From assembly GCA_000708835.1 (NCBI GenBank), contig DF236971.1:124001-188000 (forward strand): a stretch of 64,000 nt of DNA. The letters run 5' to 3'. Shown piece after piece: positions 7,146 through 42,012 of the stretch. Both the position numbers and the translations under genes were made by a program. The notes beneath the pieces were generated by a model. The model was not told the origin of the DNA. It saw only the letters and a list, made by a program, of their open reading frames with translations, and did no database searches. Origin of the DNA: Klebsormidium nitens. Lineage: Eukaryota; Plantae; Klebsormidiophyceae. Numbering within the stretch: position 1 is the first letter of the stretch; the number at the start of each line of letters is the position of its first letter.

Positions 7146-10100
7146 GTTCTGCTATCGCTCCGAGTGGCACTACTACTACTACCACAACCACTATTACCAC
7201 TGTAACCAGCACTAGTCCAGGGACCGCAGCCCCTGAGAAAAGCTCCACGGTTGGTGAGGGCAAGCACGCCGTAGACGCCGTAGTGGCTGCGCCGTAGTAG
7301 ACGCCGTAGTGGCTGCGGGCTTTGTAGCCTCCTTAAGTCTCCGATAGCAAATGAGACTTCCTCCAAATTTAGATGTCCACATTTATCAATCAAAGGGAAA
7401 ACGGATACTTGTGCGTGTCGAAGGTTCTCTGGTGCATGTTGCAGGTTCTCCAATGTGCTAGTCTGAGTGAGGGACCATTTTTGTCATGATTTGCAACAGC
7501 AGAGTTACAAGTCATTGTCACTTTACGTCCTTCTCTGGCCTGACTTCTGTTCCGTTCAACCCATTCATATACCCGTCCCTATTATCGGTTGGCTGTCTTT
7601 GGTGGTTTTGTCCCGGCTCGAGTTAGAGGTCCTGTCTTGAGGATGCTTATCACTTTCAAAGAAGAACGTACTCCGATTCAACCTCTGACGCCATGTAGAG
7701 TTGCAGGCACGTGCATTTACGAGTCTGATAGTCGAATAACGTTCCAGACTTGTATTATGAACGTTCCTCCCAAATTCTGCGACAGCGCCGGTGCCCTTTT
7801 GCCTTCCTTTGCACATGCAAAACGGAGTCTTCTCTGGACGATTGGCCAGCTCAAACATGGAAGAGCGCTTGCCCCTGACGTGAGGTGCCGTAGGTCCTCG
7901 ATGCTTCTACATGCTGAGCTGCTCATACCCTTATTACCCATTGAGCCGCACTCTGTTTTGTCACATCACTTCAGGGCCAAAAGTCAATCGTTCAAGTGAC
8001 CTCGTGTACAAGAGCGCTGCTGGTTACAGTTTTCGGAACTCCTAAGGCACATTCACTCGCGACTCTCTCACGTTTGGAGAAAGCAGACGCTTTTGTCACC
8101 TTTTCCCGAGGGTATTCATGCTCCAGAATCTGAACTTTTCGCATTTCAAAGGGACCGATTCTACCGCAGGCACCCCTTCAACCGGCGTTGCAGACGACAA
8201 GCTCGGCGACGGGGGTCTGGTTGGCGTAGTCGACAAGGCACTAAGCGGAGGTGGACAAGGCCAACAAGGAGCGGGCACGGCGACACCCGTAGCAGGTATT
8301 GGAGAACTGCAGACTTCAAGTTGGCTTGCGTAGATAAAGCGATCAGTGCTGAGTTTTCTCGAAGCCAAAGGTTCCAACATGAAAAATCGCTCAAATGTAC
8401 CCGCTCAACTGCTCGGTTGCATTTTAGAGCTGTGGGGGTCTGGAACCTCATCTTATGTATTCTGGAGTTCGTTGAGTTGCAAACCAGTCCGCCACAGGAC
8501 GGCTTTCATTTGGGTGTTGATTTCACACGCAGGCACCCCTGCAACTGGCGTCGCGGATGACAAGCTAGGCAACGGGGGTCTGGTTGGGGTAGTGGACAAG
8601 ACGCTGAGCGGTGGTGGACAGGGCCAGGAAGGAGCGGGCACCCCTGCAGCAGGTACGGGAGAACTGGCTCGCATACTTCGACACAGTCAATGATGCACGA
8701 ACTTGCTCGAAGTCAAAAGGATCCTATGCGAAAATCGGCCTAGCGAACCTTCTCAATATTGCTTGTGCTTGGTTGCAATTCACCGCTAGGGTAGTCGTCG
8801 ACCCTCGTCCCATTTCTTCCTTAGTCTGTTGAGTCGCGAACTCAATTCGCAAAATCAGAATGGCTTTTGTTGAGGTACTGTACTTCACACGCAGGCACCC
8901 CTGCAACCGGCGTCGCGGACGACAAGCTAGGCAACGGGGGTCTGGTTGGAGTAGTGGACAAGACGCTGAGCGGTGGTGGACAGGGCCAGGAAGGAGGGGG
9001 CACCCCTACAGCAGCAGGTACTGGAGAACAGGCTTGCATACTTCGACACAGTCACTGATGCATGTACTCGCTCGAACTCAAACGGATCCCTTGTGGAAAT
9101 TTGCTCTGGTGTACCTTCGGAAGATTCAATCTGCTCGGTAGCATTACACCGCCAAGGGGGTCGTCATTTCTCGTCTCATTCATTCTAAAGTTCTTGAGTT
9201 ACAAAGGTCATCTGCACAGAACGGCTTGCTTTGAGGTATTGATATTACACGCAGGTACCCCTTCGACCGGTCTCGCGGACGACAAGCTTGGCGACGGGGG
9301 TCTGGTTGGGGTAGTTGACAAGGCCCTAAACGGTGGCGGACAAGGCCAGCAAGGAGCGGACACTCCTGCAGCAGGTAGGAGAACATGCTTGCATATCCGA
9401 CACAGTCAATGATAGACTTGCTCGAAGTAAAAGGATGATTTGTGAAAGTCTGATCTCGTGTACCTTCTCAAAACTGCTTGTGCTCGGTGGCAATCACCGC
9501 TAGGAGAGTCGCCGATCTCGTCTCGTTTTTTACGTAGTCTGTTGAGTTGCGGACGTATATTCGCACAACTTGGCTTTCAATGGGGTGCTCGCTCCTTGCT
9601 CCACCTCGTCGAGCTTCGTGTCGACCTGTATCTAGTTCGTCAAGGACCTGACGAGATAATCTGCTTCTATGCGAATCTCAAAGGTTGACTTTGGAATGCA
9701 GGAACCGATTCAAGCGGAGCCGCAGATGAGACGCCCGGCGACCGGGGCCTGGTTGGGGTAGTCGACAAAGCACTAAGCGGTACAAACGCAAGTGGTGGCG
9801 GTGAACAAGGTGAACAAGGAGCGGGCACGACTGCGCCTGCAACAGGTATCAAAGAGGAACCCGCTTGCTGGTTATACCTAGCGCATACAAAAGCTGATTT
9901 CCTTCAATCGGTCAGATCCACTGTGACGGTCCCCTTTGTTGCTTTTCATACAGTGGATCATGTGCTCAATTCAAATATGCTGCTATGGTGGCTGATATTG
10001 CGAGATTCTTGCTTTTCCTTTCAGCAAGTTAAATTGTAACACTCGTTGAGCCGTTCCGTTTTGATCTATTCTAAACTGTGTATCTTTGTGCGTCTGTCCA

Positions 10101-13100
10101 TTGCGGAATACGGGCTTCCATTTATATCTAAAGGAGCAAATTGTATATGCAGGCACCCCTACAAGCGGTGTTGCAGCCGACAAGCCCGGCGACAAGGGTG
10201 TAGTTGGAGTAGTCGACAAGGCTCTCAACGGTCCAGCTTCCACGGGCGGTGGTGAACAAGGTCAAGTATGCAATTCAATGCTCTCATGTCCCGTATGATC
10301 GTCTTAGGTTCTTATATGCTTATCTTCAAATTCGGTCACACGTGAACTATCGAAGCTGATGACCCTTGCGTGCTTCAGAATAGAACACTCACTTCATTTC
10401 TGACCTTCAAGCGGTGCTCCCCAGAAATCTGTCCGTTTCTCTGTGGATATGGTTCTGATCAGTCCGCTTCCATGTACGCATTGGGAATTGAGAAAACATC
10501 AATTGCAGGTACTACTACAGGCGGTACTGCAGATGACAAGCCCGGCGACCGGGGTGTGGTTGGAGTAGTTGACAAGGCATTAAGTGGCACAAACTCCAAG
10601 GGCGGCGGTGGCGAACCTGGTCAAGAGCAAGGAGCGGGCACGACTACGCCAGCAACAGGTGCTCGGGCTCAAGAAGGATTTGCTTGGGCCCTTATTCACG
10701 TGTGATTGATGTTATCAAAGGTCGAAGTTGCCATAACCTAAAGGGATCCATTGTGAGCCTCTACATTAGAACCCCGTGCTGTCGACCTCAAGATCAGATT
10801 GGTTTGAAGAGTTTCGTAGATCTGATGTATTGTATTCCCTAATGTTCTAGAAGCTGTTTGTGTCTCGCTTTTGTGTATAATCACTTACAGTCACAAGAAC
10901 CACAAAATGTGATCAGCGATGAGTGGTTTGGTTTGGAATGGGGGGCTTGTTTCTTTCCGGGTTTCGTGTGCATTCGACCCCCATTCTCTCCAAGGGTATG
11001 TCTGTCTTGTGGATTCGACGTTCATGAATGTCAGTGGGATCTGCTTCGAATCTAGATATTCCAGTCTGAGAATTGAGCAAGTGCTCGTTCTCAAAGTCTC
11101 ATGACTAGATTGGTCAATTCTCCGATTCTGTGACGCTTGCATTTTCAGCTCCTTTGAAATTTATCAGAGATGAAGGTTGGGGTAGATCAGAAATCAGCAT
11201 TGCACAGTTTCCAATTGGGGCACGCACGTCTTACGTAATCGTTTCAAGCAGAGCGTCTCCCCGGTTTGTCCAAGTTTTTATGGTGGTACGGTCGAATAGT
11301 ACGTTTGCCATCTGTGACGCACTTTTTAGTAGGATCAATTTAAAATGCAGGAACTACATCTAGATGGATCCACTTTGGTAATCTGAACTCGTACCCCTTC
11401 TCACAGTCTGAAGATCCGATCGGTTTAAAGCAGCCTGTCGTTCTAGTATTCTGACTTCCAAGAAGCTTCTTGACGGATAAGTTTCAGAGTTGGGCTAGAG
11501 TCGGATCAGCGTTGTATGGCCCTGAGATAGGGCATGCGCTTCTTATTTTATCTTTTCGAGCGATGCATCTTGCCCGTTTTGTATTCTTTTACCTACGGTA
11601 TCATGGTCCGGATGATTGCTGTTGGTGACACAATCCCGATAACACAAATTCTACGTGCAGAGGTTACTCCTGGCGGGGGCACCAATGACAAGCCTGGTGA
11701 CGGGGGTGTGGTCGGAGCAGTCGACAAAGCATTGAACGGACCAGGCTCCAAGGGTGGCGGTGGAGAAGGTGGAGGAGTGGGCACGGGTACGCCCGCATCA
11801 GGTACCAAGTCTTGAACATGAGTTGCTTGTTTATATTCATCTGTCCTGATGAAAGTGAACCCCCTCAGATCCAGACGAATCCAATTTGAGAATCTAGCTT
11901 GTACCCCTTCTCCCAATTCTCAAGTTCCGATTGGTCGTTCGTTCTTGTTTCTTTGGGTCCTCTTTTGGCCGATGAGTTTTCGAGTGGGCTTAGAATCCGG
12001 TCAGTGTTGCATGGTCCTGAGATGGGGCACGCGCTTCTCACTTCATCTCTTCGAGCAAGCATCTTGCCCGGTTGTAGTCTTTTACCGTTGGTATAATTCG
12101 AACGATCTGCCGTTGGTGACGCAATCTTAATGAGACAAAGTTTACTTGCAGGGGTTACTCCCGGCGGCGTCACAAATGACAAACCTGGTGACGGGGGTGT
12201 AATTGGGGCAGTCGACAAAGCATTGAACGGACCAAGCTCCAAGGGTGGCGGTGGAGAAGGTGGAGGAGTGGGCACGGGTACGCCCGCATCAGGTACTAAG
12301 TCTCGAACATGACATGTATCTATGTTAATCAGAAAGTAATTCTCTTCAGGCCCAGATAAATCCACTCTGAGAATCTGAGCTCGTTCTCCTTCTCACAGTC
12401 TCAAGATTCGCTCTGTCTGAACCAGTTGTTCATATTAGTTGTTCATTCTAGTTGTTCTGAGGTTCCAAGAAGCTTCTTGACGGATAAGTTTCAGAGTTGG
12501 GCTAGAATCGGATTAGCGTTGTATGGTCCCGAGATGGGGCGTGCCCTTCTTCTACTATCTTTTCGAGCGATGCTTCTTTAGCCGGGTGTATTCTTTTACC
12601 GATTGTATGGTTTGGACGATCTATTGTGGGTGACACAATCCCGATAAGACAAATTTCACCCGCAGGGGTTACTCCCGGCGGCGTCGCAGACGACAAACCT
12701 GGGGACGCGGGTGTGGTTGGGGCAGTCGACAAAGCATTGAATGGACCAGGCTCCAAGGGTGGCGGTGGAGAAGGTGGAGGAGTGGGCACCGGTACGCCTA
12801 CATCAGGCACTTAGAATTTGATCCTGCTCGAATCCAGATGAACCCACTTTGGGAATGCTCGAATCCAGATGAACCCACTTTGGGAATCTGAGCTCCTACC
12901 CCTTCTCACAATCCTCAATTTTCTCTGCCGTTTGTTCTGGTTACTTTCGGTTCCGCAAAGATTTTGGCCCATGGCTTTCAGAGCTGGCGTTGCATGGTCT
13001 TGAAATGGCACGCGCTTCATATTCTTATCTTTTCGAGCAATGTATCTTGCCCGGTTTTAGTCTTTTACCAGAGTTATGGTTCGGATTATCTAGCGTTGGT

Positions 13101-16100
13101 GATGCAGTTCCAATAAGACAGATTCTACATGCAGGGGTTACTCCCGGTGGCGGCACGAATGGCAAACCCGGTGACGGGGGTGTGGTTGGGGCAGTCGACA
13201 AAACATTGAACGGACCAGGCTCCAAGGGTGGCGGTGGAGAAGAAGGAGGAGTGGGCACGGGTACGCCTGCATCAGCTACTAAGTTTTGAACATGACATGG
13301 ATCTATGTTGCTTAATAGTAATCTATTCTGATCCAAATGAATCCAATCTAAGCACGTACCCCTCTCGTTCCCCTCTCACGGTTTCAAGATCCGATCGGTT
13401 TGAACCAGTCGTTCGTTCTGGTTATTCTGTGTTTCCAAGAAGCCTTGNNNNNNNNNNNNNNNNNNNNNNNNNNNNNNNNNNNNNNNNNNNNNNNNNNNNN
13501 NNNNNNNNNNNNNNNNNNNNNNNNNNNNNNNNNNNNNNNNNNNNNNNNNNNNNNNNNNNNNNNNNNNNNNNNNNNNNNNNNNNNNNNNNNNNNNNNNNNN
13601 NNNNNNNNNNNNNNNNNNNNNNNNNNNNNNNNNNNNNNNNNNNNNNNNNNNNNNNNNNNNNNNNNNNNNNNNNNNNNNNNNNNNNNNNNNNNNNNNNNNN
13701 NNNNNNNNNNNNNNNNNNNNNNNNNNNNNNNNNNNNNNNNNNNNNNNNNNNNNNNNNNNNNNNNNNNNNNNNNNNNNNNNNNNNNNNNNNNNNNNNNNNN
13801 NNNNNNNNNNNNNNNNNNNNNNNNNNNNNNNNNNNNNNNNNNNNNNNNNNNNNNNNNNNNNNNNNNNNNNNNNNNNNNNNNNNNNNNNNNNNNNNNNNNN
13901 NNNNNNNNNNNNNNNNNNNNNNNNNNNNNNNNNNNNNNNNNNNNNNNNNNNNNNNNNNNNNNNNNNNNNNNNNNNNNNNNNNNNNNNNNNNNNNNNNNNN
14001 NNNNNNNNNNNNNNNNNNNNNNNNNNNNNNNNNNNNNNNNNNNNNNNNNNNNNNNNNNNNNNNNNNNNNNNNNNNNNNNNNNNNNNNNNNNNNNGGTTTG
14101 AACCAGTCGTTCGTTCTGGTTATTCTGTGTTTCCAAGAAGCCTGTTGACGGATGAGTTTTAGAGTTCGGGTAGAGCCCGATCAACGTTGGATGGTCCTGA
14201 GATGGGGCATGCGCTTCTAAATTATCTTTTTGAGCGATGCATCTTGCCCGGTTGTGTTCTTTTACCAATTCTTTTACCAATTGTATGGTTCGGATGATCT
14301 GCCGTTGGTGACGCAACGTCAATAAGACAAAACTACATGCAGGGGTTACGCCGGCCGGCGGCACAAACGACAAACCTGGTGACGGGGGTGTGGTTGGGGC
14401 AGTCGACAAAGCATTGAACGGACCAGGCTCCAAGGGTGGCGGTGGAGAAGGTGGAGGAGTGGGCACGGGTACGCCTGCATCAGTTACTAAGTCTCGAACA
14501 TAATACGCTTGTTATATGCATCTGTGTTGATTAGAAAGTGATTCTACTCAAATCCAGATGAATCTAGTTTGAGAATCTGAGCTCGTACCCCTCTCGTACC
14601 CGTCTCACAGTCTCATAAAATCCGATCGGTTCGAATCAGTCGTTCGTTCTAGTTATCTGAGTTCCAAGAAGCCTTTTGACGTATGAGTTTCAGAGTTCGG
14701 TATGGTCATGCGATGGGACATGCGCTTCGTATTTTATCTTTTCGAGCGATGCATCTTGCCCGGTTGTATTGTATTACCAATGGTATGGTTCGGATGATCT
14801 GCTATTGTTGACACGATCCCGATAAGACATTTTTACGTGCAGGGGTTACTCCGAGCGGCGGCACAAATGGCAAACCTGGTGACGGGGGTGTGGTCGGGGC
14901 AGTCGACAAAGCGTTGAACGGACCAGGCTCCAAGGGCGGCGGTGGAGAAGGAGGAGGAGTGGGCACGGGTACGCCCGCAACAGGTACTTAGGGTCAAAGG
15001 AATGCTTACGTCTGTAATCCTATTGACCAAAGAATGAACCTGCTCCCTGATTAGTTGTGGATACAATTCTATGAATCTGAGCTAGTACCCTTTTTCGAAA
15101 TCTCAAGATTGAGTTGGTAACCCTGGGCCCTCATTGTCTGGTTTGGAAAGTTACCGAAGCAATGACTTTTAGAGGTAGGGTAGAACTGAATCAGCGTTGT
15201 ATGGTTCTAGGATGGAGCACGGCTTCTTTCCTTGTATTTTCGAGCGATGCATTTCACATGCTGAGATACATATTTTCGGTCGAGAAACCTTTGGTTGATT
15301 TGAAGTTACGCCTCAGCCGTTTCTCTCGATCTATCAACATCGGCGGCCAGTTGATCACCTTGGATGTTTCCAAACGGCCCGACTCTGGCTTTGCGATTAA
15401 CGACATGCCCTGGTATATTTTGATGTGTAGGTCGGGATGCTGGAGCTACTGAGAATGGAGCCGCTGCCCCTAGAGCCGGCGGAACTGCGACCGGATCCGG
15501 AATCACGACAGGTTCGTGCAAGTCCAGGAGCTGGGAGACTGTTGGTTTTGTCGTGCTTGCTTCGAGCCTAGTCGATACTTTCCAAAGAGCTTTCGGTTTG
15601 GTCCCGACTTCAAACTGTGGGTTTGGACAACAAGCCTAAGGTTGAAAGGATGGGCAAAGAAAGTGCTTGTGTCTGGTTGATCAACGAACCGTGCTGTCAT
15701 AAATTCCGGCCGTGTCTCATTCAAGTAAAGGCCAGCTAGTTGTTTTTGCTGATCAGCTGAAACCCGAAGAGTTTGTGACCTACGTCATCCGACTGACTCT
15801 GATTTACTTGGGTTCTAGGCTACGTTGGTAAATTGTGTGGTAGACCATCTCGAGTCCTACTCGCCGTTTGAGATAACAAGGTTGCTTCGCAATCTGCTTT
15901 CAATAAACTACATCTGAATCCGGGATCGCGTATGCCCAACACGCGGAGTAACTTGACCTTGTGGTCGTCCTTTCACTTTTACAGGCACCAGTAACGTCCC
16001 GGCGCGCAATACCCATACCGGACAGCACGACTCCGGGGGCACTAATGTCCAGCAAAATGTTGACATCAACATCAACTTCAACCCCGATGGCTCCGGTTAC

Positions 16101-19100
16101 TTTGGTCAGCCCGTGCGAACTGCGCCGACGGCGCCTGTGGCCAGCCCCGCTCTTTCAGGTGAATTATCCTCACGCAACCATTGACCGGGCTTGTGGTGGG
16201 GGGGCAGGGGACTTTTGGTTGTTGTACATCTCAACATTTCAGCTTGCTGAATTTCTAGCCACGCTACTCGGTATCCGGAAAGTGACCGCTGGATGTGCCT
16301 TTCATCACCAAGGCCGCTTCTCGTTCTTTTGTCAGCGCACTGTCGGACTTGCCCAGCCTCGTGTAACCTTTTCGGGAATCGAAGCAGAACGGCACCTCAG
16401 ATGCATTCCCAAATCACAATTAATGTCTGCGTCAAGTGTCCTTCTTGGAATGACCGACTGAGTTCGACGGCTCGTTTGATTCTACCTATTGGCTGAACAG
16501 TCGTTGACAGGTTCCTATCTAAAGCGGACAACACTGCACAAAAAAGCGTGTTGCCACTACACTTATCTGGACTGGCACATCTGGACAGCCTATTATCGAA
16601 TGCAAGCCGCTGGCGCTCGTTTGCCAATCCTGGAATTGTGCACCGCAATTACCTTCGGCTCAGGGTTTCCGTCTTTTCACGACAGGTGGCGGCTCATCAA
16701 CGGTGGAAGCTCAGCAACCGATGGAGTCGCAACCGCGCAACCTGCTCACATCAACAACCCTACAGCCGGCCGCGTCAAGAACGTGGAGCCGCAAACTGCC
16801 GACGAAGCGGTGAAGTTCCTCAAGCATACCCAGGGTTTTGGGGAAGGCGTTCTGCAGCGACCAGACGGCACGGGTTTGGCGCCCAACACCCGCTTGGAGC
16901 CGGGGAAGGACTACATCTTCGTTCCAAGTGCTTCTCCCAGTGAGACTCGCCGTACGAAGCTGCCTGCTGCGAAGATGCGTTAATTGAGGTCCAGCCACCG
17001 GTTATTGACGACGACATCCGGGTTTCGTCTGTCGGCCGGTCCGAATCTGCTTCTGTTCTGCCTACGTTTCCTGTAAACAAAGACATTCGTCTATACTGCA
17101 TCGGCAGGTTCTACACCCACACACGAAGCAACCTTGCTGACGGCCCGTCAGATTATTAGACGGACCTGGATTTGAACCTCAGTGTGCGAGTCGACAGGCA
17201 AATAGGTACGGACGAGATTGAGTGATTTGAGATCGTGCTTCGTTATGAACGAAGATAGCCGTTGTAAATTGCATGTAAGCTTTAAATTGAGATTTCAAAA
17301 GTGTTGCACTTTACCTGTAGCACCCACTGATGGCGGCGGGAACGGTCATGCTGGTAACGACAGCAAGCCTTCAGACGCCGCCCGTCCGGCATCGCCAAGC
17401 ACAAATGGAACCGGTAAGAACCAAGGTCAGAGAGCGGAGTATTGCTTCAAGATAAACTCCCGTCTTCCAAAGCGCCAATCATTCTTCAAGTAGCGAGCAG
17501 TCAAGCGACACTCTTTTGCCACCATTCCTTTCTGTGGATCATTTGTAACTAGTGTTCTTGGTTGTAAAAAGTTGAAGGCTTATTCCTTTTCAAGCTCCAG
17601 GAAACGGGTATTGTAATGGTTGGGGGCTTGCTCGATGCATTTGTGCGTTTGCGACTGAGAGCTGCCTCCATATCCTATACTCGCCGATAGGAGGATTTGA
17701 CGAGTTGGATCAGAAGCTGACTTACGGCTAAGCACTCCGTTTTGGTTGACGAACCCTGCCGTTAAGAGCTTGATGCCTCCGACGGTCGAGTCCGTTAACC
17801 CCTCCGCTCGTCTTCCCTTAACCATGCTTTTGTTGCGCCTTTTTGCAGGTGGTTCGGAAGCGGCTTCAGGTGCACAAGCACGGGTGGTGCGCATCAGGAA
17901 TGCTTCAGCCGGCCAGATCTCGGAAGTGGAGCCGCAGACCGCCCGCGACGCACTTCAGTATCTGAAGAACATATCTGGATTCAGCAGCGGCGTCTTGCAG
18001 AACAAGAATGGCACGGGATTGGCGCCGGACACTCGCTTGGACCCGAGTCAAGAATACGTCTTTGTTCCAGGTCCGAACTCGACGTCCTTTTGAAGCAAAC
18101 GTCCAGAATTCGTTCACAGGTAGGATTTGATAGAAATAGAAATAGTAGCTATCCTAAGGACGTTAGCATTTTGGACAGCGGGCTTACCGTCCATGTTTTA
18201 CATGGAGGGTTGTGCTTTTTTGCGTAGGATCAGCCTCGAATATCCGTACTAACAAAAATACGCTAGAAACCAAATTGACGAGGTTTTTTGAGCAAATCAC
18301 AAACCACTTGTCTTTGCGATTGCGAAGTCAATGAGTTGATCTCATTGAACCAGTGCGTCATCCGAGTCGGCCGCAATGGCGAAGGATCCTTCGACATTTC
18401 TCTTTGAGTCGCGATTTGTACTGCCTTTCCGCCAGCCCTACACACGAAACTAAAAGAATCCGGCCTTGTCATAGCTAGCACCCGAGCGAACGGCCGTCAG
18501 TGCTAGCGAAGTAGACCTCGTTCCCATGTAAAACCACGGGACTCCCTTTCTTTCCAGTGGGCTGCATGATTGTTAGCATGATTCTATCTACTTCAGCAAT
18601 GAGACCTCAAGGCATGCAGGGCGCGACGATCGCAGATACCGGTCTTGACTCGTACTTGTTTGTGGCTGCTTGCCGACTGGAGGAAACTGTCCCGGAGGGG
18701 TATGTGCTACTATAGTCCTATTGATCGGTTGCTTCACTTGTCTTACCTCTAAGTCTGCAGGCTCGTGGCAATTTGATCAGCATCCAAGCAGTTTACTTAA
18801 GAGTAACTCGCGACGAAGCAAAGACCTGGTAGCCTGGAGGGAGCCGCATTCCACCTCCTTTCTCTGCAGATTCGGCAACGCGTGGCCACAAGGGCTCCGG
18901 CGGGACTGGCGCAGGCGCCCCCCAAGACGTGTCTGACGGCTCTTCTGGCGGTGCGGCCGGTGGTGACTCTGGTAGTTTGCCGGCGACTTCGAGTTGGCAA
19001 AATACTCAAAGCGCCTAATTGTTGTGTCTGCTCCGTTCTGCCTTTTCCTGGCCGGGTCTTCGATATTCGCTTCTCCTTCCCTTGGCAAACATATGCTGAT

Positions 19101-22100
19101 GGGTGTCAACATACGCTCAGATGACGAACGATGAGAAAGCAGATTACAGGTTTCCGAAAGAGCGATGCGGGTCGGACTCTCCGGATCACAGCCTTTTTGC
19201 GAAGGTTAACCCGCAGCAGGGTTCGGTTCATCCGATGCTGCGTATGCTTTTTAGTGACTGGCAGATACCAGCCCACAGTGTCAAACAAGGATAAGCAGCG
19301 GCGGCCACCCTTAGGACACAGAGCCGAGGCGCCTATGATTGGGTGGTACAAGATGCGCTCCGTTGCTCTTTGTAAGGGATTGTTTTTCGCGGTTCTCCGT
19401 AAGCAATTGGTCTTTCCGTCTTCACACTTTATTTGTTCTGCGTTTAACCAAAGCGAAGGCCTCCTCTAACGTGAAGCCTTCTTTTTGTCCCTAGGTGGTT
19501 CGGGGCCAGGTTCCACTGCGACTGCACAGGTTGTCCGGATCGTCCACTCGTCGACTGGCCGGACGTCCGACGTGGAACCTCAGACCGTCCAAGATGCACA
19601 AGAGTACTTGAGGAACCTGCCGGAATTCGGGCCAGGCGTTTTGCAGCGGAAAGACGGGACGGGCTTGTCTCCCGGTTCTCGGCTGGAACCGGGGCAGGAC
19701 TATGTCTTTGTCCCGAGCCGTAAGTGGATCTGATTCCAGTTGGATCCTTGGGCTGCATGTTCTGTTCCCATGGGCTGTATAATCTGTCGTGTTCGCCTCG
19801 GAGACACGGCATGTTCTGTACAATTTGCCTCGAAGCAATAGGTAGAACTTGTGCAAACGGATTGGGCTTCGCAACTTCCGCTCCTCAAAATTTCAAGCTG
19901 CTCGTTTTCTGGTTGCGCTCGCACGCGCGGAGACGCGCTTGCTTCGACAGAGTGTGCTATGCTGCTGGTTCTAGAAAAGCTTAGTAATAGTCAGCATGCG
20001 TCACAGTTCTGCCTCAAAAGACCGAGAAGAGCTCTCAGAAGCGGATCGGAGCAGACCCATACGTCGTCGTTGATGCTCCCAATATCGTTGCATTTAACAT
20101 TTCTATCTTTTCTGAAGACGCGCTGACTCAATATCTCTAACTCCAACGGAGTACGACGCCCGGCGGCGTTCAGAATTTTCAAGAGGTCTTGGTGACCAAT
20201 AATGAGTCTCACGTTTTATGAATCATGCAGGCGGAGGGTCCAGCGCAAAGCCCGCAGATGACACCAAACCCGACCGAGGCCGGGCTGGCGCTGACGTCCA
20301 GCCCGGTACTGGAGCTACCAGCGACACGGATGCTGGAAGGAAGACAGGCGGCGGGGGTAAGTCGGATCAACGTACCTGTCGAATGTTTTTGTCCGTGCAA
20401 TCTACGTCAGAGTCAGCCGCTTTTTAGTAGGAACCTGAAAATTGGCTTTGACGTGGATCCTTGCGGGAATGCTTACAAGAGCGCCTTTCCACAGGCAGGC
20501 CGGACTTGAGTAAAGGCCAATGTTGTATGCCTTCTTTCCAGATGCTACGGAAATGTGGTCCGGAATCCCTTTGTTTGCCAAGAAAGACAAACGGTGACCG
20601 CAAAAAATCGCTCTTTTGGAACAGGTCAACGCATGCAAATGGGCTGGAAGTTTAAAAATTTGGGTGGGAGTACACGTCAGCACATTAGCTTTCCGACTTT
20701 GCTTCACGCCTGGAAAGGGTCTATTTGGCGTCGAGCATTCTGAAAGGTCTGCTCTGGAGATTTGTGCCCAACCGTTCGGGGCCTTCTACGCTTTGCAGGT
20801 ACTGATGCGGGCCAGACATCCGCACTGATAACGACCGCAAGCGGCGCCAGTCAGCCTGTGGAGCCCCAGACTGTCTCGCAAGCCCTTGACGCGTTGAAGG
20901 GCATTCGAGGATTTGGGGAGGGCGTCCTTACAGCGGAGGACGGGACGCTCTTGGCGCCAGAGACCCGTCTTCAGCCGGGCGGACAGTACACCTTCGTGCC
21001 GGATAGTCCCTCAGGTCCGTTTTGCCTTGCCGTGATTTCGAGTTCCTGGAAGTCTTCCGGTCACACAAAAAATGGCAGCAAAAATTGCTATCGTGGCTCC
21101 GAACGTAACGACTTTCAAGCATACCAGGACTACGATGCGGGGTTGCTTTGTCAGGCCTGATTCCTAGTTGGAAATGTGTTACTTTGTCTTTGATTCTTTG
21201 CTTGCCTCTTCTGTCGGTCCGATATCTGGACATCGGCCAAGTGAGCCAGTGTTGTCTCCGGTTTCATTGTCTCCGGTCTCGAGGCAATTCCATCATCAAG
21301 CTCAGTGTACGGAGAACTTAATGATCACAGCGGACGAGTCTTCCTTTCATACTGTGAATGACAACCCCAACTCAACGAGCAAACGGAGGCATCATTGAAA
21401 CTCTAAGCAGCTTTTGCGAAGCACTGAGTCGTCATATTCTCTCTCCAAAGGTGCAGGCGCGGGAGCCGGCGAGAACGGCGCTAGTATTGTCACTGGAGGC
21501 GGCAATCAGAAGCGAGGCGCTGACAGGCCCGGTCCTGCCGGTGGAGGTGAGATCTCTCTATATATCGGGATTGCGTCTGAATCAAATTGTAAGGTGGGCA
21601 CCGTCTCGGAGGGAGAATGAACACAGCCGTTCACTTCTTACTTTTGCGAAGCTGAGTGACTTACTCGCTCATAAGTGGAGGAATCTGGAACAGCCTGCAG
21701 CCAAAATACAACTGATTACGGTAGATCGACCGGTCTCGATAAGCGTGAATCCTTTTGTTGTCATGTGTCGGATGTGTTGGGCGGAATCAGCACGATCAAG
21801 CCTCCTGGCCGGTGTAGGCTCATGTAAAGATCACGCTTTCGTTCTGACGCTCACGGAGACGGAAGAAGATGTAGTCTTTTTGTTGTCTCGATCTTCGAGC
21901 TTCTCCTCACATATGCTGGTCCGCCGGGATTCCACGGAACCAGTATCCATCATAAGTCGCCCTGTAGATTTAGAAGAAGGCTTTTTGATTGAGAGCACCG
22001 GCGTTGCTATCGAGCTTTGGAGGGAGTTCTGATTCCCTCCCTGGATGTCCCCGGTGTCTCAAGCTTTGATGCGGTTGCATTCGACGGTCTGGAGGTCGCT

Positions 22101-25100: not shown

Positions 25101-28100
25101 TCGAAGCCTCAGCATCAGAATTTAAGAATATCCCTCAGTAACGGGTGTCAATCTTGTCATAGCTTTGCCTTCAGAAGGAACCATTTGAGAAAAGCTGCAT
25201 TTTGACCTAGGCTTCAACTTTCGATTGTTTCTGTTCACGTGCCATGTGTCCTCTCAGGCTCGATTGAGTTTGAGCTGGTGACTATTCTGTAATTATCAAT
25301 GTGCTCGCTTCACTCTTCCTCAGGGTTGCTTTTTCCGAAGCCGAGCATCAGATTCTAGATTCCTGCTCTTCAGAATCCTTGGGTGCAGCGCTCAAAGTTA
25401 CCCTTGAACTGTTTACAGGTAGCCAAGGTGGTGCCAAAACGGACCCGATCGTCATCGGGAACCCAAGCGGCGGCTCCCCTGCCAAGTTGCAGCCCCAAAC
25501 GGTGGGAGAAGCGCTGGATGCGCTGAAGGGCGTAGGCGGATTTGGAGAGGGCCGCTTGCAGAAGCCTGACGGCACCATCTTGGCTCGCAGCAGCCCGCTG
25601 GAACCGGGGGTAGTATTCGTTCCGAATGTCCCTAAAGGTGGGCCAACCAGCCTGTCAAATCATCGCTCGCTTCAATCCCAGATGTTCTGAAGTTCAGGTT
25701 CGTTTCTCCGAATGTTCTTTGCAAAGCCGTCTTTACGAATTGGTGACTTAAACTACGTGATAATCTTCAGAGTCTTCCTTAGAATGTGGCCTCTTTTTTC
25801 CAATATGCTGCCCTTGAGCTTGTACGCTGTGTCAGAACCCAATGTTACGTTTCTCCCTTTTCTGCAGGAAAAACTGACCCTCCAAAGAAGGACGACTCCA
25901 GCGCTGGCCAGCCAGCAAGCCGTGAGGGCGACGGCCACGCGCCCAACGGGACAGAGAAGGGCGGCACAGCAGCCAGGGATGCTTCTGGAGGTGAGAACAA
26001 CGCACGCATTTTGGTATCCGGGCAACGCAGCCCCAGCGACAAGAATCTAATAATGGCCCCTCTCAAGCAAAGACCTCAACGTAGTTCTCTGCTTGCGATA
26101 CTTTCAAAGCTCTACTTCCGCAGGATCCTTCAATGGCCTGTTTAGAAATTGACATCAGCAACTCCGTACGAGCTAAGCTGCAAATGTATGCAGCGGTTGG
26201 ACGGTCGCATCATGCCTCGTTGGTCTCCCGCATCTTGTTTTGACAACGGTCCAGCTGGACAGCTGGACTTCCGATACAGAATAAGTCGTTGTTGCGCTCG
26301 GCTGCGTCTTCAAACACAATCCGGGACATCCTCCGGGAGCTCTCCTGCCTCCCGTGGGAGCTTTACGGTGCCCTTCGACCAATCGCAGGTGGCAAAAGCG
26401 GCGGCAGCAAGGACCCAATTGTCATCCAAAACCCTCGGAGCGGCGGCTCCCCTGCAAAGTTGCAACCCCAGACCGTTGGGGAAGCGCTCGATGCGCTGAA
26501 GGGCGTGGACGGCTTCGGGGAGGGTCGCTTGCAGAAGCCCGATGGCACAATTTTGGCTCGCGGCAGCCCGTTGGAACCGGGGGCAGTGTTCGTTCCGAAC
26601 GTTGCCGAAGGTGGGCCAACCAGCCTGCTAGAATAACGCTCTTGTTCACCTAAGCAAGGCTTGCATCCACAGGCCTAGTTGGTTTGCATGTCTCCTTTGT
26701 CTTCCCGAATGTCCTTCAAAAAGCCGTCTTTAGGGAGCCTTGAACCAGGTGATGATTTGAAAGTTTCCTGAGCAATGTGGACTCTCTTCAACACGCTGCT
26801 CGTGAGCTCGTGCACAGCAACAGAAGACAATCTTTGCTCCTCTCTTTTTGGGCAGAAAAAGCTGACCCTCCGAAGAAAGACGACTCCAGCGCTGGCCAGC
26901 CAGCAAGCCGCGAGGGCGACGGCCGGGGGCCCAACGGGGCAGAGAAGGGCGCAGGAGCTGGTGACGCTTCTGGAGGTAAGAATTGCGTGGGCAGTGCGGA
27001 TTACCTTTCGTGCAAGGCAGCCCAGTCCGGATTTGGTCCCCCTCAAGCCAAGTCCTCACTGTTGTTTTACCGCTTGCCAACAGTTCTGCAGCTCTTAGAC
27101 TCCTACGATGTTCCCCCAAGACTAACGATCCGAAAGTCGAATGAAAGACAAGAAACCAAAATAATGAAGAAGGCTGTCCTCCCATCAGCATCGGACAGTC
27201 GCACTTTGCTTCTTTTCACATGCCGTGTCCTTTGGCGGTCCGATCGGCCTGAATTGAGTCAGGATTGCCGTGCGCTCACCCTCATCTCAGATTGCATCCT
27301 TGAGAGCAAATCTGGAACCGATATTTTCGAGTCCTCTGGGAGGTTTGAGATGCTCATTCCACCATCTGCAGGTGGCAAAAATAAGGAGCCAATCGTCATT
27401 GAGAACCCGAGCGGCGGTCTTCCTGCCAAGCTGCAGCCCCAAACGGTGGGGGAAGCGCTGGATGCGCTGAAGGGCGTGGACGGCTTTGGGGAGGGCCGCT
27501 TGCAGAAGCCCGACGGCACCATCTTGGCACGCGGCAGCCCACTAGAACCGGGGGCAGTCTTCGTTCCGAACGTCGCAAAAGGTGGGCAACTCAACATACT
27601 GGTATCTGAGTTCTCGCCCTTGGTCGCCTAAGCAGGACTTCGCTTCCAAACTAGCTAGCTCGCACTCCATTGGTCTGAAATTCATGTGCCGACGTGTGCT
27701 TAGACAAGCCGTGACATAGGCAGGAGAGGGCTTGAACCGGGTTGTGATCAAGCGTCGACGACAAGAGACGGAACTGTGTTCATCTATTTTTGGCAGGAGA
27801 AAAAGCTGACCCTCCAAAGAAGGACGACTCCAATACAGGCCAGCCAGCAAGCCGTGAGGGCGACGGCCGTGGGGCCAACGGGGCAGAGAAGGGCGGAGCT
27901 GGGGACGATTCTGGAGGTGAGAATCGCGTGCGCATTGCGGGTCAGCTTCCGTGCGACGCAGCCCAATCAGCAAGATATCTGGATATGGCCCCTCTCAAGC
28001 AAAACCTTCATCAAATTTTATCTGCTTGCAGCAACCTCAAAGGTCTAATTTTGCAGGATTCTTCATAGTTTTGACATTGACAATAAGCAATCCGTACGGA

Positions 28101-31100
28101 ATAGGCTTCAAGTTCACGCAGCAATCGGATATTCGCACCTTGCCCCGGTGTTTCGGGTTCCGTGTTTTCTTTGCGCTCCGATCGGACTTACGAATGTTCA
28201 AGTTCTCATTGCGCTTCGCTCACTTTGGCTTATGCTGCCCTTTTAGAGCAACTATGGAAGCAGATTTTTCCCTACTTCTGTGGGAGTTTGAGGTGCTCGT
28301 TCTCCATTGGCAGGTGGCAAAGGCAGTGCCAACAAGGACCCGATTGTTATTGGGAACCCGAGCGGCGGTGCTCCTGCTAAGTTGCAGCCCCAAACCGTTG
28401 GGGAAGCGCTGGATGCGCTGAAGGGCGTGGACGGCTTCGGGGAGGGCCGCTTGCAAAAGCCCGACGGCACCATCTTGGCCCGCGGCAGCCCGCTGAAACC
28501 GGGAGTAGTTTTCGTCCCGAATGTTGCTGAAGGTGGGCGCATCAGCATGCTAGGATGTTGCAGCACTTGGTCGCTTGAGCAGGGCTCATAGATTAGCGTG
28601 CACTGAGCATCTAGACCAAAGTTCTCTTTCAAGTGCCCAAGTGCTTCATGCGCCGCAGTGGATGGAGCGCAGGGCTTGCATCGGAGGTATACGGAGGCTA
28701 CGAAATACTTTAAGCCAAAACGTTATCCTCCTGCTCTCGGCAGGAAAGGATGACCCACCTGAGAAGGATGATTCCGGCAACGGCCGAGGGTCTGGCGGGG
28801 CGGAGAAGGCACAAATGCTGCTGGAGGTGAGAAGAACGAATGCGCTTTGCTCTCACCTTTTGAGTGACGCATCTCAATTCTCAGCGTCAACACTTTTGAT
28901 CTCGACCCCTTTCGAACGCAAAGGCCTCATTCGAGTTGTGCCGCCCGCAGAGCTTCCACCGCTCGTTATTGCAAGACTGATTGCTGCGTTCCTGCTAGCG
29001 CAACGTGAGTACCGCAACTTGCCTCGTTGCTTCATTGTGCCGTGCAGTTGTTTTGGCCCGATCAAGAGTACTTGTCTTTAAGTCTGATTCAAGTCGGTAT
29101 ATGTTGCCTCTTTTAGGCTAGGGGTCATCTCTAGCTCTCAAGGTACTACGAGGCACTCTTCGACCATTTGCAGGTGCCAACAAGGAGCCGATTGTAATTG
29201 AGAACCCGGGCGGCAGTTCTCCTGCAAAGATGCAACCCGGCCAAACTGTGGGGGAAGCGCTGGATACGCTGAGGGGCATGGACGGCTTCGGGGAGGGCCG
29301 TTTGCAGCGCCCCGACGGGACCATCTTGGCTCGTGGCAGCCCATTAGAACCGGGGGTGGTGTTTGTCCCGAACGTTGCTAAGGGTGAGGTCGATCAACTG
29401 CTAGTTAAGTTTCCTTCGTTAGCTGCCGCCAAACAGACGGCCCGTTTTTGTCCTCGGCCGTTCGGTTCAATGTCCTCCTTTCAACATGCACGGACAGTAT
29501 GAGTCGGAATCAGGGAATCTCTTTTCCTGCGAGTCGGCCGATGAGGAGGCCGTACTTCCAGTCTCCTCTCGAATGGTCACCACAAAAGCCAGGTCTATAG
29601 ATCCTACTTGGTGTTACTTTTGACGGGATACGAAAGTAGGGTGGAGAATAGTGCATAACAAAGGTAATTATCCTAGCCGTCAGCAGGCAAAATCGAAACT
29701 GACACGATGGACCGACCAAAGACGCACTGAAGACCGGCGAGCGTACCTGGGTGTGGAAAAGGACAGCCTCCTTTCCGGATTGGTCGTGTGCAAACAGATT
29801 CATTCATCGGGCGGCTGGGGATTGTGGTCGCTTTCGTCATCTTTGCTCTGAGCAGGCGGGAGAAAGTATTGTCGGATCCGGCAGATACTTGACGACCTCA
29901 CCGGCATCTTGTTGCAGATAAGGGCAAACCGGCAGAGCCAAAGCCGCTGGAGCCAAAGCCGGCGGAACCGAAGCCGGCGGAGCCAAAGCCGGCGGAACCA
30001 AAACCGGCTGAACCAAAGCCGGTGGAGCCGAAGCCGGCCGAGCCAAAGCCCGCGGAGCCAAAGCCGGCGGAACCGAAGCCGGCGGAGCCAACTCCGACGG
30101 AACCGAAGCCGGCCGAGCCAAAGCCCGCAGAACCGAAGCCTGCAGAGCCAGTTCCGACGGAACCGAAGCCGGCCGAGCCAAAGCCGGCGGAACCGAAGCC
30201 GGCAGAGCCAACTCCGACGGAACCAAAGCCGGCAGAGCCAAAGCCGGCGGAACCGACGGATCCAAAGCCAGCGGAACCAAACCCGCCGGCAAAAGAGACA
30301 CCGGCGGCTGACCCCAGCGAGCAGCCGATTCCCCCGAATCAGCCCCCAAGCCTGCTCAGTAAGACACTCTTCGCCGCTTCCTTCGAACGGATACGTAGTT
30401 TCCCAGGCATCATTCAACTCTTGCTGGCCCTGTTCGTATCGACTTTTTCAAATGTTTGCTTCTTCCAGACCTGTTCCACGTGTATTGAGGGGCAACATAT
30501 ACACGTGCGGAGGGTAGGCAGGAATATCAGTAGTGACATAAGTCGACGGGGTATTGGGCGCTTATAGAAGAAGTACATAACAGGCTTCTTTGTGTAAGTC
30601 CAAGTCTCTTGACTTTTCGAGACCGGCACTAGATCTCTCACGCTTTCACGTCGCGCGTCCTGCAGAGAACTGGGACTTCGAGAACGAGAGAGAGGCCTTC
30701 AAGAACTACAAAGGGGACCGCGTGGTGGACATGCGGTCAACCGAGCTGACCGACTGGAGGATCACCAAAGGCAACGTCGAACTCATCGGCAGCGGCTGCT
30801 TCAAAGCACAGAGCGGGGACTACTGCGTGGACCTTACCGGCCGTCAACCGGGCGGCGTCGAGCAGGTAAGGAAGCGGCAGACTACGGAGACCTCCTTTTT
30901 GAATGTGTGTAGTCTTCGGCGGAGGTTTTGAATGGAGTTGCGAGACTGCTCAGATGGCTTTCCAGCCAAGGGTACGGAAGAGGCGTTACGGGCTTCGAGC
31001 CAGTCTAACCAATAAGGCGTGCTTTTTAGAGCTGACGGTCATAGCTTTAATTGAAGACGGCTCGAATTGCTTCCAACCTTCGGTTTCAAATGAAGACTGC

Positions 31101-33607
31101 GCTTCAGGCCCTTTTGTGTAGCAAAGCAAAGCAAGGCTTGAGGCAACCATACAGGCCTTACGCGCATTTTTCGCTGCGCTGGCCGCGCTGTGTCCTTCGA
31201 CCTTTCAAGAATATTTTACCTCTCAGTAGCATGGGAAGAAGTTGCCACTAGCAAACGACCCTCCGACGCCCCCTGTGCAGTCCTTCGACACCGAGAAAGG
31301 GGCGATTTACACCGTCACTTTCGGCCTCGCCGCCAATCCGGAGCATCCGGGGACCGACATCGTGCACGTGTCTGTCGGCGACTTCAAGAAGGCAATCACG
31401 TCTCCCAAGTCGCCCTTCAACAAGAAGGGGGGCAAGCCCTACCCCTCCAAGTGGGCTGACGTCACCTTCGCCTTCAGAGCGACCGAGTCGAGGTCTACGA
31501 TCCGTTTCGAGTCACCATGCGGCAACAAGGGAGTCTACGGGCCTTGCATCGACAATGTCAGGATCGTCAAGGGTGAGTCTGGAACGACGTCTGTGCTTAG
31601 TCTGCAGTCTCAGAACCGGTTTCAAATCCGCACAAGACTGTTTTGACCGGATCCTTGCTGACAAGAGTCAGAGCACCACCCGCCGACTCGCCGACTGGTG
31701 TCAATACCTCCAACATCTGTCAGATCTGGGCAGTGTGTATGACACGCTGATAGGGTCAATCCCAACAGTGCTGCACCTAAGCTTACTTGGGATCCCTTTC
31801 ACGCTCTTTCGGCAAAGCGACAGCTTTGTTTATAATCGGGAGAATTATCAGACGTGGTCGGTAGAGGTACGTCCCTGCAATATGCACATAGCATTCGTTT
31901 TTGCAGCAGGCGTCTGTTTCTCTCTTCTGCTGAAATCCAGTCTTGCATGTCTTTCTGTCTTCTCGCGTACAAAATGTGCCTTTCCGTCTTTCTGCAGGTG
32001 GAAAGCTGCCACAGCCGAGCCCCAATCTGATCAGTAAGGCCTCCACTCAAATCAGAATCTTGCAGCTAACTCCGTAGACTCATCTCCTCATTTGCATCAT
32101 AAACGAAGAGCTTGAACTCTCGCTCAGAGTCCTGACAGCCGTCCGTTTGAAGCGAATCCCGACGAGAGACAAGTAGCACCTCTTGCTTGGATTCGTTGTT
32201 TTTAGTTCGTCTCATTCTGGAACCCACTTTCCTGCCTCACCAAAGTCATTGATGCTTCTTTCTCGCTTTCTACGCTTGATGGGCGGTGCATATCGCTTTT
32301 TGTTAGAGCTTGTGGAAGCTCTTCCCTACATCAAGAGCCATCTCGTACCCGCCTCGCCCTAACCCCCGCGTCTCTTTCTTGCAGAGAACGGTGACTTTGA
32401 GGACAGCCCGCCGGACGTCATCGACCGCGCTAACCCCGACAGGAATGTGAAGGCCGGGTCAAACGAGATCCCGCACTGGACCGTTGGCAAAAGTGACGTG
32501 GACCTCCAGCGGCGCGACCCGGGCACGTGGGGCTTCGCTCAGTCCGGCGACTTCCACATCGACCTCAACGGACGTCACGCCGGGTCCATCCAGCAGGTGC
32601 GCTTCGACGAAGTTTCGGACTGTCAGAACATTTAAATTTTCGGGTTTAGAAATTTCAAGACTTTGCGACATTGGCCCTTACGTCTTCAAAGTGGTTCTTC
32701 TTTGACATACTTGGCGAGTTGTCCGTACCTTATCTGACGGCTCCCGACCCATTTATTGCCCATTAGCCCACTGGACGGAGGCCTGAGACGTCCCCGCTGC
32801 ACAAAGACGGCAGACGACGTCCGTGTTGCCTAATGCTGTCAACAAGTGACGTATCTGCGCACCACGGCTGTCAAAAGTCCTTTAGTCCTCTCTTAAGAGC
32901 TCAGCGTTTGCAATGCCACCTTCAATTCAATCAAAACGTTCGCCATACAGAAGGAGCTTGAGTAGCGGCACACCAATCCATTCTCGCGCATGACGTCATG
33001 CTCGCCTTGCTTTCATTCTACTTGAGAATCGGTTTGATATGCCACTTCTGCACAGGACTTACTCAGGTGCTAAGCAGACATTACCAGACTAGAGTATTCG
33101 ACAAGGTATCCCACAAACAACCGGTATATAACCTTGCTCTAGGGCTGTTATCGCCCAAGTCAACTTATTGGACATAAGACTATTTCCTAACCAGCCCATA
33201 ACCACCCCTGGTCAACGTCCAGAAATATTTGTTTCGATAATCTTGAGCAACGCCCCCTGCAGACGTTCCCCACCACGCCGGGCCAGAAGTACGTCGTCCG
33301 CTTCGCGCTGGCCGGCAGCCCCGCCGGGCACCAGCGCAACAAGACTCTCGACGCAATCGTGACCGTTGCTGACGTCAGGAAGGTCATCCAGTCGCCGCCG
33401 GGCCAAGACGGGAAGTCGACCTTGTGGGAGACCCACACGTTTGAGTTCACCGCCACGGCTGATCAGAGCACTCTTAAATTCGAAGGGGAGGACTCTAACA
33501 ATAGCGCGTATGGCGTGTTGCTTGACAACGTTGCGGTCGTGCCGGCCGGGGCGAAGATACCGGTGACGGAGCCGGATTATGATAAGCATACGGTGGAGTT
33601 TGTTTAG
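7146..33607 (+). CDS. Giant modular repeat protein, probably extracellular/cell wall (at least 45 exons, about 2,500 aa); start codon not resolved
   Basis: A chain of exons bounded by (y)ag|...|gt, phase 1 at both ends: 7146-7253 (Thr-rich), A repeats 8170-14983, 15431-15511, 15985-16158, B/linker array 16686-29383, and KPAEP exon 29918-30358. The final exons are 30666-30865, 31281-31572, 31998-32033, 32385-32596 and 33263-33607 (TAG). No internal stop or new start separates the blocks, but two exons are 1 nt short and three donors are non-canonical, so a single transcript is inferred, not proven. Confidence 0.7.
12826..12887. repeat. Perfect 31-bp tandem duplication in the intron after exon A10
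   Basis: gctcgaatccagatgaacccactttgggaat occurs twice back to back; the paralogous introns carry only one copy. Confidence 0.9.
13448..14094. other. Assembly gap (647 N) inside the type A exon array
   Basis: Run of N; about 48 bp on either side are identical. Confidence 0.99.
16686..29383 (+). repeat. Array of 12 exons encoding a ~60-aa repeat domain (type B, PQTVGEALDALKGVDGFGEGRLQKPDGTILARGSPLEPGxVFVP) alternating with 11 Gly/Asp/Pro/Lys-rich linker exons
   Basis: B exons: 16686-16939, 17849-18070, 19495-19719, 20799-21014, 22232-22465, 23501-23719, 24476-24694, 25419-25637, 26389-26610, 27372-27581, 28314-28532, 29174-29383. Linker exons: 17321-17413, 18870-18971, 20231-20356, 21451-21546, 22979-23083, 23970-24077, 24934-25065, 25868-25990, 26856-26975, 27797-27916, 28744-28826. 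Confidence 0.92.
29918..30358 (+). repeat. Coding 15-bp minisatellite: about 22 tandem KPAEP-type pentapeptides in one 441-nt exon
   Basis: Repeating AAG CCG GCN GAR CCR units; acceptor ttgcag| at 29917 and donor |gtaaga at 30359. Confidence 0.95.
30666..31572 (+). other. DUF642/choice-of-anchor-C-like (galactose-binding-like beta-sandwich) domain 1 of the giant protein
   Basis: Spliced sequence SLLKNWDFE...DWRITKGNVELIG...SGDYCVDLTGRQPGGVEQ|SFDTEKGAIYTVTFGLAANP...WADVTFAFRATESRSTIRFES...YGPCIDNVRIV matches the motif layout of this family, recognised from memory. Confidence 0.8.
32385..33607 (+). other. DUF642/choice-of-anchor-C-like domain 2 (C-terminal) of the giant protein
   Basis: NLIKNGDFE...EIPHWTVGKSDVDL...SGDFHIDLNGRHAGSIQQ|TFPTTPGQKYVVRFALAGSP...WETHTFEFTATADQSTLKFEG...YGVLLDNVAVV. 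Confidence 0.82.
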
Positions 33608-41400: not shown

Positions 41401-41981
41401 AAAGTTGAAGACGACAACTGCAGAGTTGGTCGTCGCTGCAGAACAGGAAGAGAGACAGTATTTATTTGCTGCTGCTTGCTTTAGGACGCAGGCGTTCGCC
41501 CCCACGATTTTGTGAATGGCAGATAATCTACCGTTGCGTTCTTCTCGTTGGGGCAGGAAAGCAACCAGATCGGTTCGCTGCTTTGAACATTCATCGAGTC
41601 ATTAAGCTTGCGTTTTTGGAGAGAGGCACTGAGCTCGATCAACCCTCAAAAGTCCGCTGCGAGCTGGGGCAGTGTACCATATGAAAGCTGAAGGAGAGGT
41701 CCAGCAGGCAATGAGAAGAAACACAAGCCTTGCTCGTGACAAGTATTTCTTCTGACAGGTGTCAGAAGGCACTACAAAAAATTCTTTGCCGAGCGGCGTC
41801 AAAAATTTGATGAATGCATCAGCGAGAAGAGAATGTGATTGCCAGGGTTGAGGTACCTCTTAATGCTTGGGCAACCATGTTGCAGAACGAAGCCAAAAAT
41901 GATTACCGCAGAGGGGGCCTCTCCAAAGTGGCCTGCACTGCCCTTCCCTTAAACACGGCCCGCTTATTTTTAACAGGATAT

Positions 41982-42012
<31 letters not shown>

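Follow-up and report, generated by a model that had tools for sequence, protein, structure and literature searches.

We identified a 48-exon spliced gene for a giant repeat protein on contig DF236971.1 of Klebsormidium nitens, on the (+) strand of the analysed window, a stretch of 64,000 nucleotides. Its architecture is real and previously undescribed. We read it as a nuclear gene whose product is probably a giant multivalent scaffold imported into the chloroplast, a reading to which we assign a probability of about 0.6.

The layout of the gene and its neighbours is given in Table 1. The original prediction had placed 40 exons between 7146 and 30358 (one Thr-rich exon, 13 A repeats, two unique exons, 12 B domains alternating with 11 linkers and one KPAEP exon) and two DUF642-like domains 3′ of them. 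This module count and order was confirmed, and the two domains were found to be encoded by five exons. The gene start, previously set at 7146, lies farther upstream at an ATG at 3784, three upstream exons having been missed. Phases and splice sites of these exons (3784–5796) match in three species, and the exon at 3784–3924 shows 77–79% identity as well as equal length and an equal donor in two other species. The statement that all 40 exons are symmetric in phase 1 holds for 38 of them, which are open and of a length divisible by three, and fails for B1 (254 nt) and linker L11 (83 nt), each of which is one base short. The size of the intact design, about 2,600 codons, is an arithmetic estimate.

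Table 1. Features of the putative scaffold gene and its surroundings, in positions of the window.
Feature	Position	Strand	Remarks
Coding exon 1, with ATG	3784-3924	+	encodes the first half of the transit-peptide-like leader; 47 codons, phase 0 at the 3′ end
Exon 2	4603-4715	+	phase 0 to 2; leader continues to Ile-Arg; 113 nt in 3 of 3 species
Exon 3	5705-5796	+	phase 2 to 1; contains the end of the IRC cleavage-like motif, followed by an Ala/Pro/Thr stretch
Thr-rich exon	7146-7253	+	108 nt; conserved in loci L010 and L011
A block	8170-14983	+	13 exons, each with one predicted short helix in a Gly-rich spacer
Starts of exons A1-A7	8170, 8533, 8895, 9255, 9702, 10153, 10509	+	
Starts of exons A8-A13	11661, 12152, 12666, 13135, 14343, 14843	+	
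Assembly gap	13448-14094	.	within the A11-A12 intron
U1, low-complexity unique exon	15431-15511	+	RNA joints at both ends
U2, most conserved unique exon	15985-16158	+	RNA joints
B1, first predicted beta-grasp exon	16686-16939	+	base missing near the start, leading to a stop at 16811
B2-B11 alternating with linkers L1-L10	17321-28532	+	RNA joints as far as L3
Starts of exons B2-B11	17849, 19495, 20799, 22232, 23501, 24476, 25419, 26389, 27372, 28314	+	
Starts of linkers L1-L10	17321, 18870, 20231, 21457, 22979, 23970, 24934, 25868, 26856, 27797	+	
Linker exon L11	28744-28826	+	83 nt; second frameshift or assembly error
B12, last predicted beta-grasp exon	29174-29383	+	
KPAEP stalk	29918-30358	+	last codons start the first DUF642-like domain
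First DUF642 / choice-of-anchor C domain	30666-30865, 31281-31572	+	two exons
Second DUF642 / choice-of-anchor C domain	31998-32033, 32385-32596, 33263-33607	+	three exons, with stop codon
MATE-type transporter	36900-43300	-	
M20/M28-type amidohydrolase	45200-47900	+	
NAD-dependent epimerase	60900-63200	+	

The phase-1 introns are copies and not independent events; the gene was assembled through duplication of phase-1 exons. A Gly codon is split at 34 of the 41 phase-1 junctions, so that spare in-phase donors are common in this Gly-rich protein. Exon A10 has a GC donor, while the usual donor is lost in A11 (CT) and A12 (TT), where a GT in phase lies 15 nt farther 5′; RNA contigs revealed that A12 is spliced at this site. 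As both edges of the assembly gap are intronic, the frame is independent of it. The 49 letters 3′ of the gap are identical to the last letters 5′ of it, compared with 15–35 of 49 for neighbouring introns, and with gap and overlap removed the spacing of A11 and A12 is about 510, which is one repeat period (469–514). The gap is thus either empty or holds a very recent, near-identical extra A unit. Such a unit would agree with one joint in the RNA contigs that enters A12 at its start, but contigs are ambiguous here because of the repeats. Even a hidden exon in the gap leaves the frame unaffected, provided that it resembles its neighbours.

The stretch from U2 to linker L4 was found in 18 RNA-like runs, which are presumed to be RNA and lack introns at GT–AG boundaries. 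Over 15900–21800, the exonic share of 31-mers is predicted by the gene model as 0.21, and seven of these runs hold 0.20–0.21. Contigs of four studies on 14100–20090 revealed the joints A12-A13-U1-U2-B1-L1-B2-L2-B3 and on into L3, and in three runs the whole series from A12 to L3 lies within a single contig of about 2.2 kb. Hence both the A block and the B block are part of one transcript. The proposal of a single gene is thereby sustained by RNA for the A, U and first B exons and by the conserved layout for the remainder. The joints between B12, stalk and DUF642 exons lie beyond the stretch covered by RNA contigs, which would leave room for the B block and the DUF642 block to be separate genes; this is extremely improbable, because the stalk exon contains no ATG and because B or linker exons lie directly upstream of the stalk and DUF642 exons in loci L003 and L008 and in the paralogue L012. 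The length and module number of the protein had also been proposed to vary. Copy numbers indeed differ between lineages, but exon skipping was absent at the eight joints tested, a result limited by the loss of rare splice forms from assembled contigs. Two candidate extra exons (17108–17205 and 18762–18850) were absent from spliced contigs. In three of four runs, unspliced contigs of low depth cover the B1-L1 and L2-B3 introns (16910–17350 and 18960–19523).

The RNA contigs of four studies equal the genome in B1, which starts at 16686, without a gap or a differing letter. This rules out an assembly error, suspected in a short G run, as the cause of the B1 shift. A compensating upstream frame was likewise rejected, because the U2 frame leading into B1 contains stops. 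In the gene model of the sequenced strain, the frame ends at 16811 after 847 amino acids, the first third of the design, and the intact protein of about 2,500 amino acids that had been predicted does not hold for this strain. The strain would mainly produce a truncated form consisting of leader, A block, U1 and U2, without the B and sugar-binding parts. The shift explains why the full protein would be missed by a gene model derived from the K. nitens genome. In loci L001, L006, L007 and L008, B1 keeps its frame. One may suppose that the full-length protein is still made via minor splice forms, given that acceptor 16715 in B1 combined with skipping of L11 would yield an open frame of 2,566 amino acids, or that the short form is a regulated product, the transcript being well represented in spite of its early stop. 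We consider both very improbable: acceptor 16686 alone is used in all four studies, a short form is not a conserved design since the orthologues keep B1 in frame, and the lesions of other lineages sit at different places.

The leader comprises 86 residues, is rich in Ser, Thr and Arg, nearly lacks acidic residues and ends in IRC, an end common to the leaders of three orthologues and a paralogue. An intron inside an Arg codon of the leader is also common to orthologues and paralogue. In the leaders of four genes (68–86 amino acids), Ser plus Thr account for 0.19–0.29, and 10–12 Arg/Lys stand against 1–2 Asp/Glu. No hydrophobic core was found in these four leaders, the longest hydrophobic run being 2–3 residues and the highest 11-residue hydropathy 0.8–1.4. 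A Ser/Thr/Arg-rich, acid-poor leader without a hydrophobic core is what one expects of a chloroplast transit peptide and not of a signal peptide; plastid transit peptides typically show a length as found here (68–86 amino acids), an uncharged Ser-rich start and an end in V/I-R-C. From its sequence, we infer that the leader is a putative chloroplast transit peptide. The leader of the neighbouring Rieske oxygenase gene has the same compositional profile. The paralogue leader, modelled from DNA alone, cannot be aligned with that of the gene described here. Both leaders agree in composition, in the IRC end and in the two kinds of position at which introns lie.

Mitochondrial presequences are also Arg-rich and acid-poor, the leader is well conserved (dN/dS 0.17–0.22) and beta-grasp arrays are frequent in cytosolic scaffolds. 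The leader might hence be mitochondrial or have no targeting role, the protein then being a mitochondrial or cytosolic scaffold. This is unlikely in view of the length, start and end of the leaders and of the paralogue leader, in which composition and end motif but not sequence are kept. A secreted scaffold of cell wall, adhesion or mucilage, the role originally predicted, is improbable. The Gly-, Thr- and Pro-rich spacers, the KPAEP stalk and the DUF642 pair would agree with it, as would the fact that DUF642 proteins of seed plants are wall proteins (PMC6651502), but the conserved N-terminus of the four genes is plastid-transit-like without a signal-peptide core. Furthermore, no membrane segment or anchor was found in the protein, and Cys is absent from the A, B, linker and KPAEP stalk blocks and present only in the leader and the first D domain. 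As judged from the sequence, the product is probably not a surface protein, and import into the chloroplast remains the preferred reading.

The head-to-head neighbour of the putative scaffold gene, at 1–2398 of the window on the (−) strand, is the Rieske oxygenase gene with its plastid-type leader, presumably encoding a pheophorbide a oxygenase-like protein; the arrangement is kept in locus L010. Between both genes, an ORF of 58–64 codons (3157–3351, (+) strand) precedes the main ATG by about 430 nt and recurs at about 4788–4964 of L010 and about 936–1112 of L011. Start, stop and two motifs are kept in three species, indels are in frame and no Pfam match was found for it. Such conservation may be that of an upstream ORF or of regulatory DNA. 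Short tandem arrays were observed at 50177, 54415 and 62233.

No credible Pfam or NCBIfam match was obtained for A, B, U2 or the KPAEP stalk. The chain of the A block contains 33% Gly, is acidic (pI 4.35) and is predicted to be disordered, with one predicted helix per repeat (residues 14–27) in a low-confidence model. These helices are 36–50 residues apart and contain no aromatic residue; known Rubisco-binding motifs carry aromatic residues. The helix sequence varies between close relatives, the hydrophobic spacing is roughly kept, and the amphipathy is only borderline when compared with shuffles.

Structure prediction of B revealed a beta-grasp (ubiquitin-type) fold with a pLDDT of 81.5. Its structural matches are ubiquitin-like chains (Z 6–7.5, TM 0.6–0.7); RbcS-like or ferredoxin folds were absent from these matches, and a conserved C-terminal Gly-Gly after the last strand was absent from the B alignments. 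A distant relative resembles the self-associating beta-grasp types KHA, CIDE-N and PB1, with scores below 0.9 that make this a lead only. A likeness of B to SLBB/ThiS was considered and rejected: one of 16 B sequences matches ThiS with an E value of 0.24, and a profile search of the PDB was blank. The matches of a B-domain profile search are single-exon ORFs of related genomes only. Among 1.84 billion representatives no full-length multi-B protein was found, the long matches being unrelated repeats. On its predicted fold, B is a new beta-grasp repeat family that is confined to the gene family described here and to short contigs related to it. More distant single B-like domains were observed on P0019 (a 38-kb ENA contig), P0012 and P0042–P0044 and might represent the domain in other contexts.

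Database searches were performed exon by exon. The first D domain matched TIGR04362 with E values of 7e-10 and 6e-14 and, on its second exon, PF04862 with 6e-09; the second matched TIGR04362 with 2e-11 and 1e-16 and PF04862 with 6e-05 and 7e-08. On TIGR04362, the half-domain exons scored 39+53 and 45+61 bits, and the cut-off of 120 bits applies to a whole domain, so that exon scores are unable to reach it. The nearest non-algal matches are named choice-of-anchor C, in a search that was limited in length and did not include plant DUF642 proteins. In its sequence, the D pair appears to resemble bacterial choice-of-anchor C more closely than seed-plant DUF642/PF04862. D also weakly matches C-terminal modules of the alpha-glucan enzyme 5x7o (E 0.026 for the best stretch), and no starch-binding Pfam family was matched. 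A MARTX match with an E value of 0.011 was discarded as noise. Together, the B and D domains comprise about 1,240 residues.

Relatives were found on contigs from environmental or other sequencing, with three further orthologous loci: L010 and L006 with L003 (one run), L011 with L008, and L007. The order A, U2, B is kept in the orthologous loci, and A-U2-B-DUF642 overall in the relatives. Leader and Thr exons are also present in L010 and L011 and the DUF642 end in L003 and L008, and an open frame runs from the ATG through B2 in L010+L006. Across loci there are about 9–10, 13 and 14 A copies (13 in the sequenced strain) and 5, 12 and at least 14 B copies (12 in the sequenced strain). B classes have expanded per lineage, the B3 type in L007, the B4 type in L008 and the B6 type in the sequenced strain and L007, according to a short, modestly supported alignment. 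The KPAEP pentamer array is missing in the matching exon of L003 and L008. U2 shows 82–97% identity in three relatives with a dN/dS of 0.10; a metagenome scan with U2 was blank, and a genome scan returned one weak bacterial match. A paralogous gene of the same layout lies on L004, L012 and L013, with its own helix motif in Gly/Gln-rich repeats, five divergent domains of the predicted beta-grasp B type and two DUF642 domains.

In every block tested (leader, U2, B, D), dN/dS against orthologues is 0.10–0.26, a sign of purifying selection. In L007 (4500–19400) and L008 (11952–12165 and 16308–16428), B and linker exons are interrupted by separate stops and frameshifts. L001 is intact at the codon where L007 carries a stop, and 9.2 kb of the L008 sequence recur without a single difference in a second sample. 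Low dN/dS together with independent lesions points to long-term selection with recent, repeated decay. Three of the four loci for which long sequence is available carry a disrupted copy, so that the gene can probably be dispensed with or is made redundant by the paralogue.

In the proposed mechanism, the 86-residue leader would be removed upon import. The mature chain would then present 10–14 amphipathic helices on a floppy tether, which may bind a stromal protein or a membrane weakly and repeatedly, and the beta-grasp string may serve self-association or partner binding. The obvious plastid glucan for two D domains of the carbohydrate-binding type would be starch. Such a scaffold could act as a cross-linker between a protein phase and the surfaces of starch or thylakoids, for which the pyrenoid would be the most plausible site. 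One can speculate further, by analogy, that the two-gene family evolved independently in streptophyte algae as a tether of the pyrenoid matrix to the starch sheath, in which A would bind Rubisco or another matrix partner, the beta-grasp string would self-associate and a redirected bacterial-type surface sugar-binding domain would bind starch. This more specific proposal is doubtful, as the aromatic-free helices, the acidic A block, the fast change of the helices and the repeated gene loss count against it.

The Klebsormidium pyrenoid is ringed by starch, and its molecular parts were described as uncharacterised in 2017 (PMC5633629). Streptophyte algae go unmentioned in a 2026 review of pyrenoid linkers, and no linker of theirs is named there (PMC13655443); a literature search for Klebsormidium together with DUF642 found no paper. 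Streptophyte algae are the closest pyrenoid-bearing algal relatives of crops, and their pyrenoid components were not found in the literature searched. A conserved multivalent protein with a plastid-type leader and ends of the sugar-binding type is a concrete pyrenoid candidate, and the sequenced strain offers a natural truncation mutant for comparison with intact relatives. Even without a link to the pyrenoid, there remain an undescribed domain layout, a new family of predicted beta-grasp repeats and the lineage-specific expansion and decay of an exon array.

Comparison with known proteins revealed partial likeness to several systems. With seed-plant DUF642 proteins, the protein has two tandem PF04862 domains in common, as found exon by exon. 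In contrast to that family (PMC6651502), it carries no signal peptide, as seen from the leaders of the four genes. Of the seed-plant signatures, NGXFEXXP is present in domain 2 only and CGPVXD in neither domain, YGPCID and YGVLLD standing in its place. Furthermore, there are more than 2,200 extra residues, and the domains score better on TIGR04362, the choice-of-anchor C model, which gives the top score for each of the four large D exons. Unlike bacterial choice-of-anchor C, the domains described here are eukaryotic, split by introns and not accompanied by a bacterial sorting signal. For B, predicted topology and structural matches agree on the ubiquitin-like/beta-grasp group (ubiquitin, ThiS, KHA, CIDE-N and PB1 types), from which it differs in having no sequence family, no conserved C-terminal di-glycine and no Fe-S cysteines.

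The pyrenoid linkers EPYC1 and CsLinker consist of a transit peptide followed by short helices 20–120 residues apart in a disordered chain (PMC11570498). In a low-confidence model, the A block shows the helix-spacing layout that was used for finding CsLinker (PMC11570498). Common to these linkers and the protein described here are a transit-peptide-like leader, spaced short helices and a lineage-restricted sequence. The differences are the absence of any observed sequence likeness, the acidic A block, helices without an aromatic residue, 10–14 helix copies instead of about five and a large folded C-terminal part. Disorder over the whole protein, a trait of linkers, is found only in the truncated form; further traits of linkers are binding and condensation of Rubisco and induction at low CO2. 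SAGA1 and SAGA2 of Chlamydomonas are large plastid proteins with repeated binding motifs and a carbohydrate-binding domain, for which a tie between matrix and starch was proposed (PMC10473226). They combine a starch-binding domain with W-containing Rubisco motifs, whereas the protein described here combines a DUF642-type pair with a predicted beta-grasp array. Repeats together with a domain of the carbohydrate-binding type, and the occurrence as a gene pair, are the likeness between both systems, which we regard as an analogy only.
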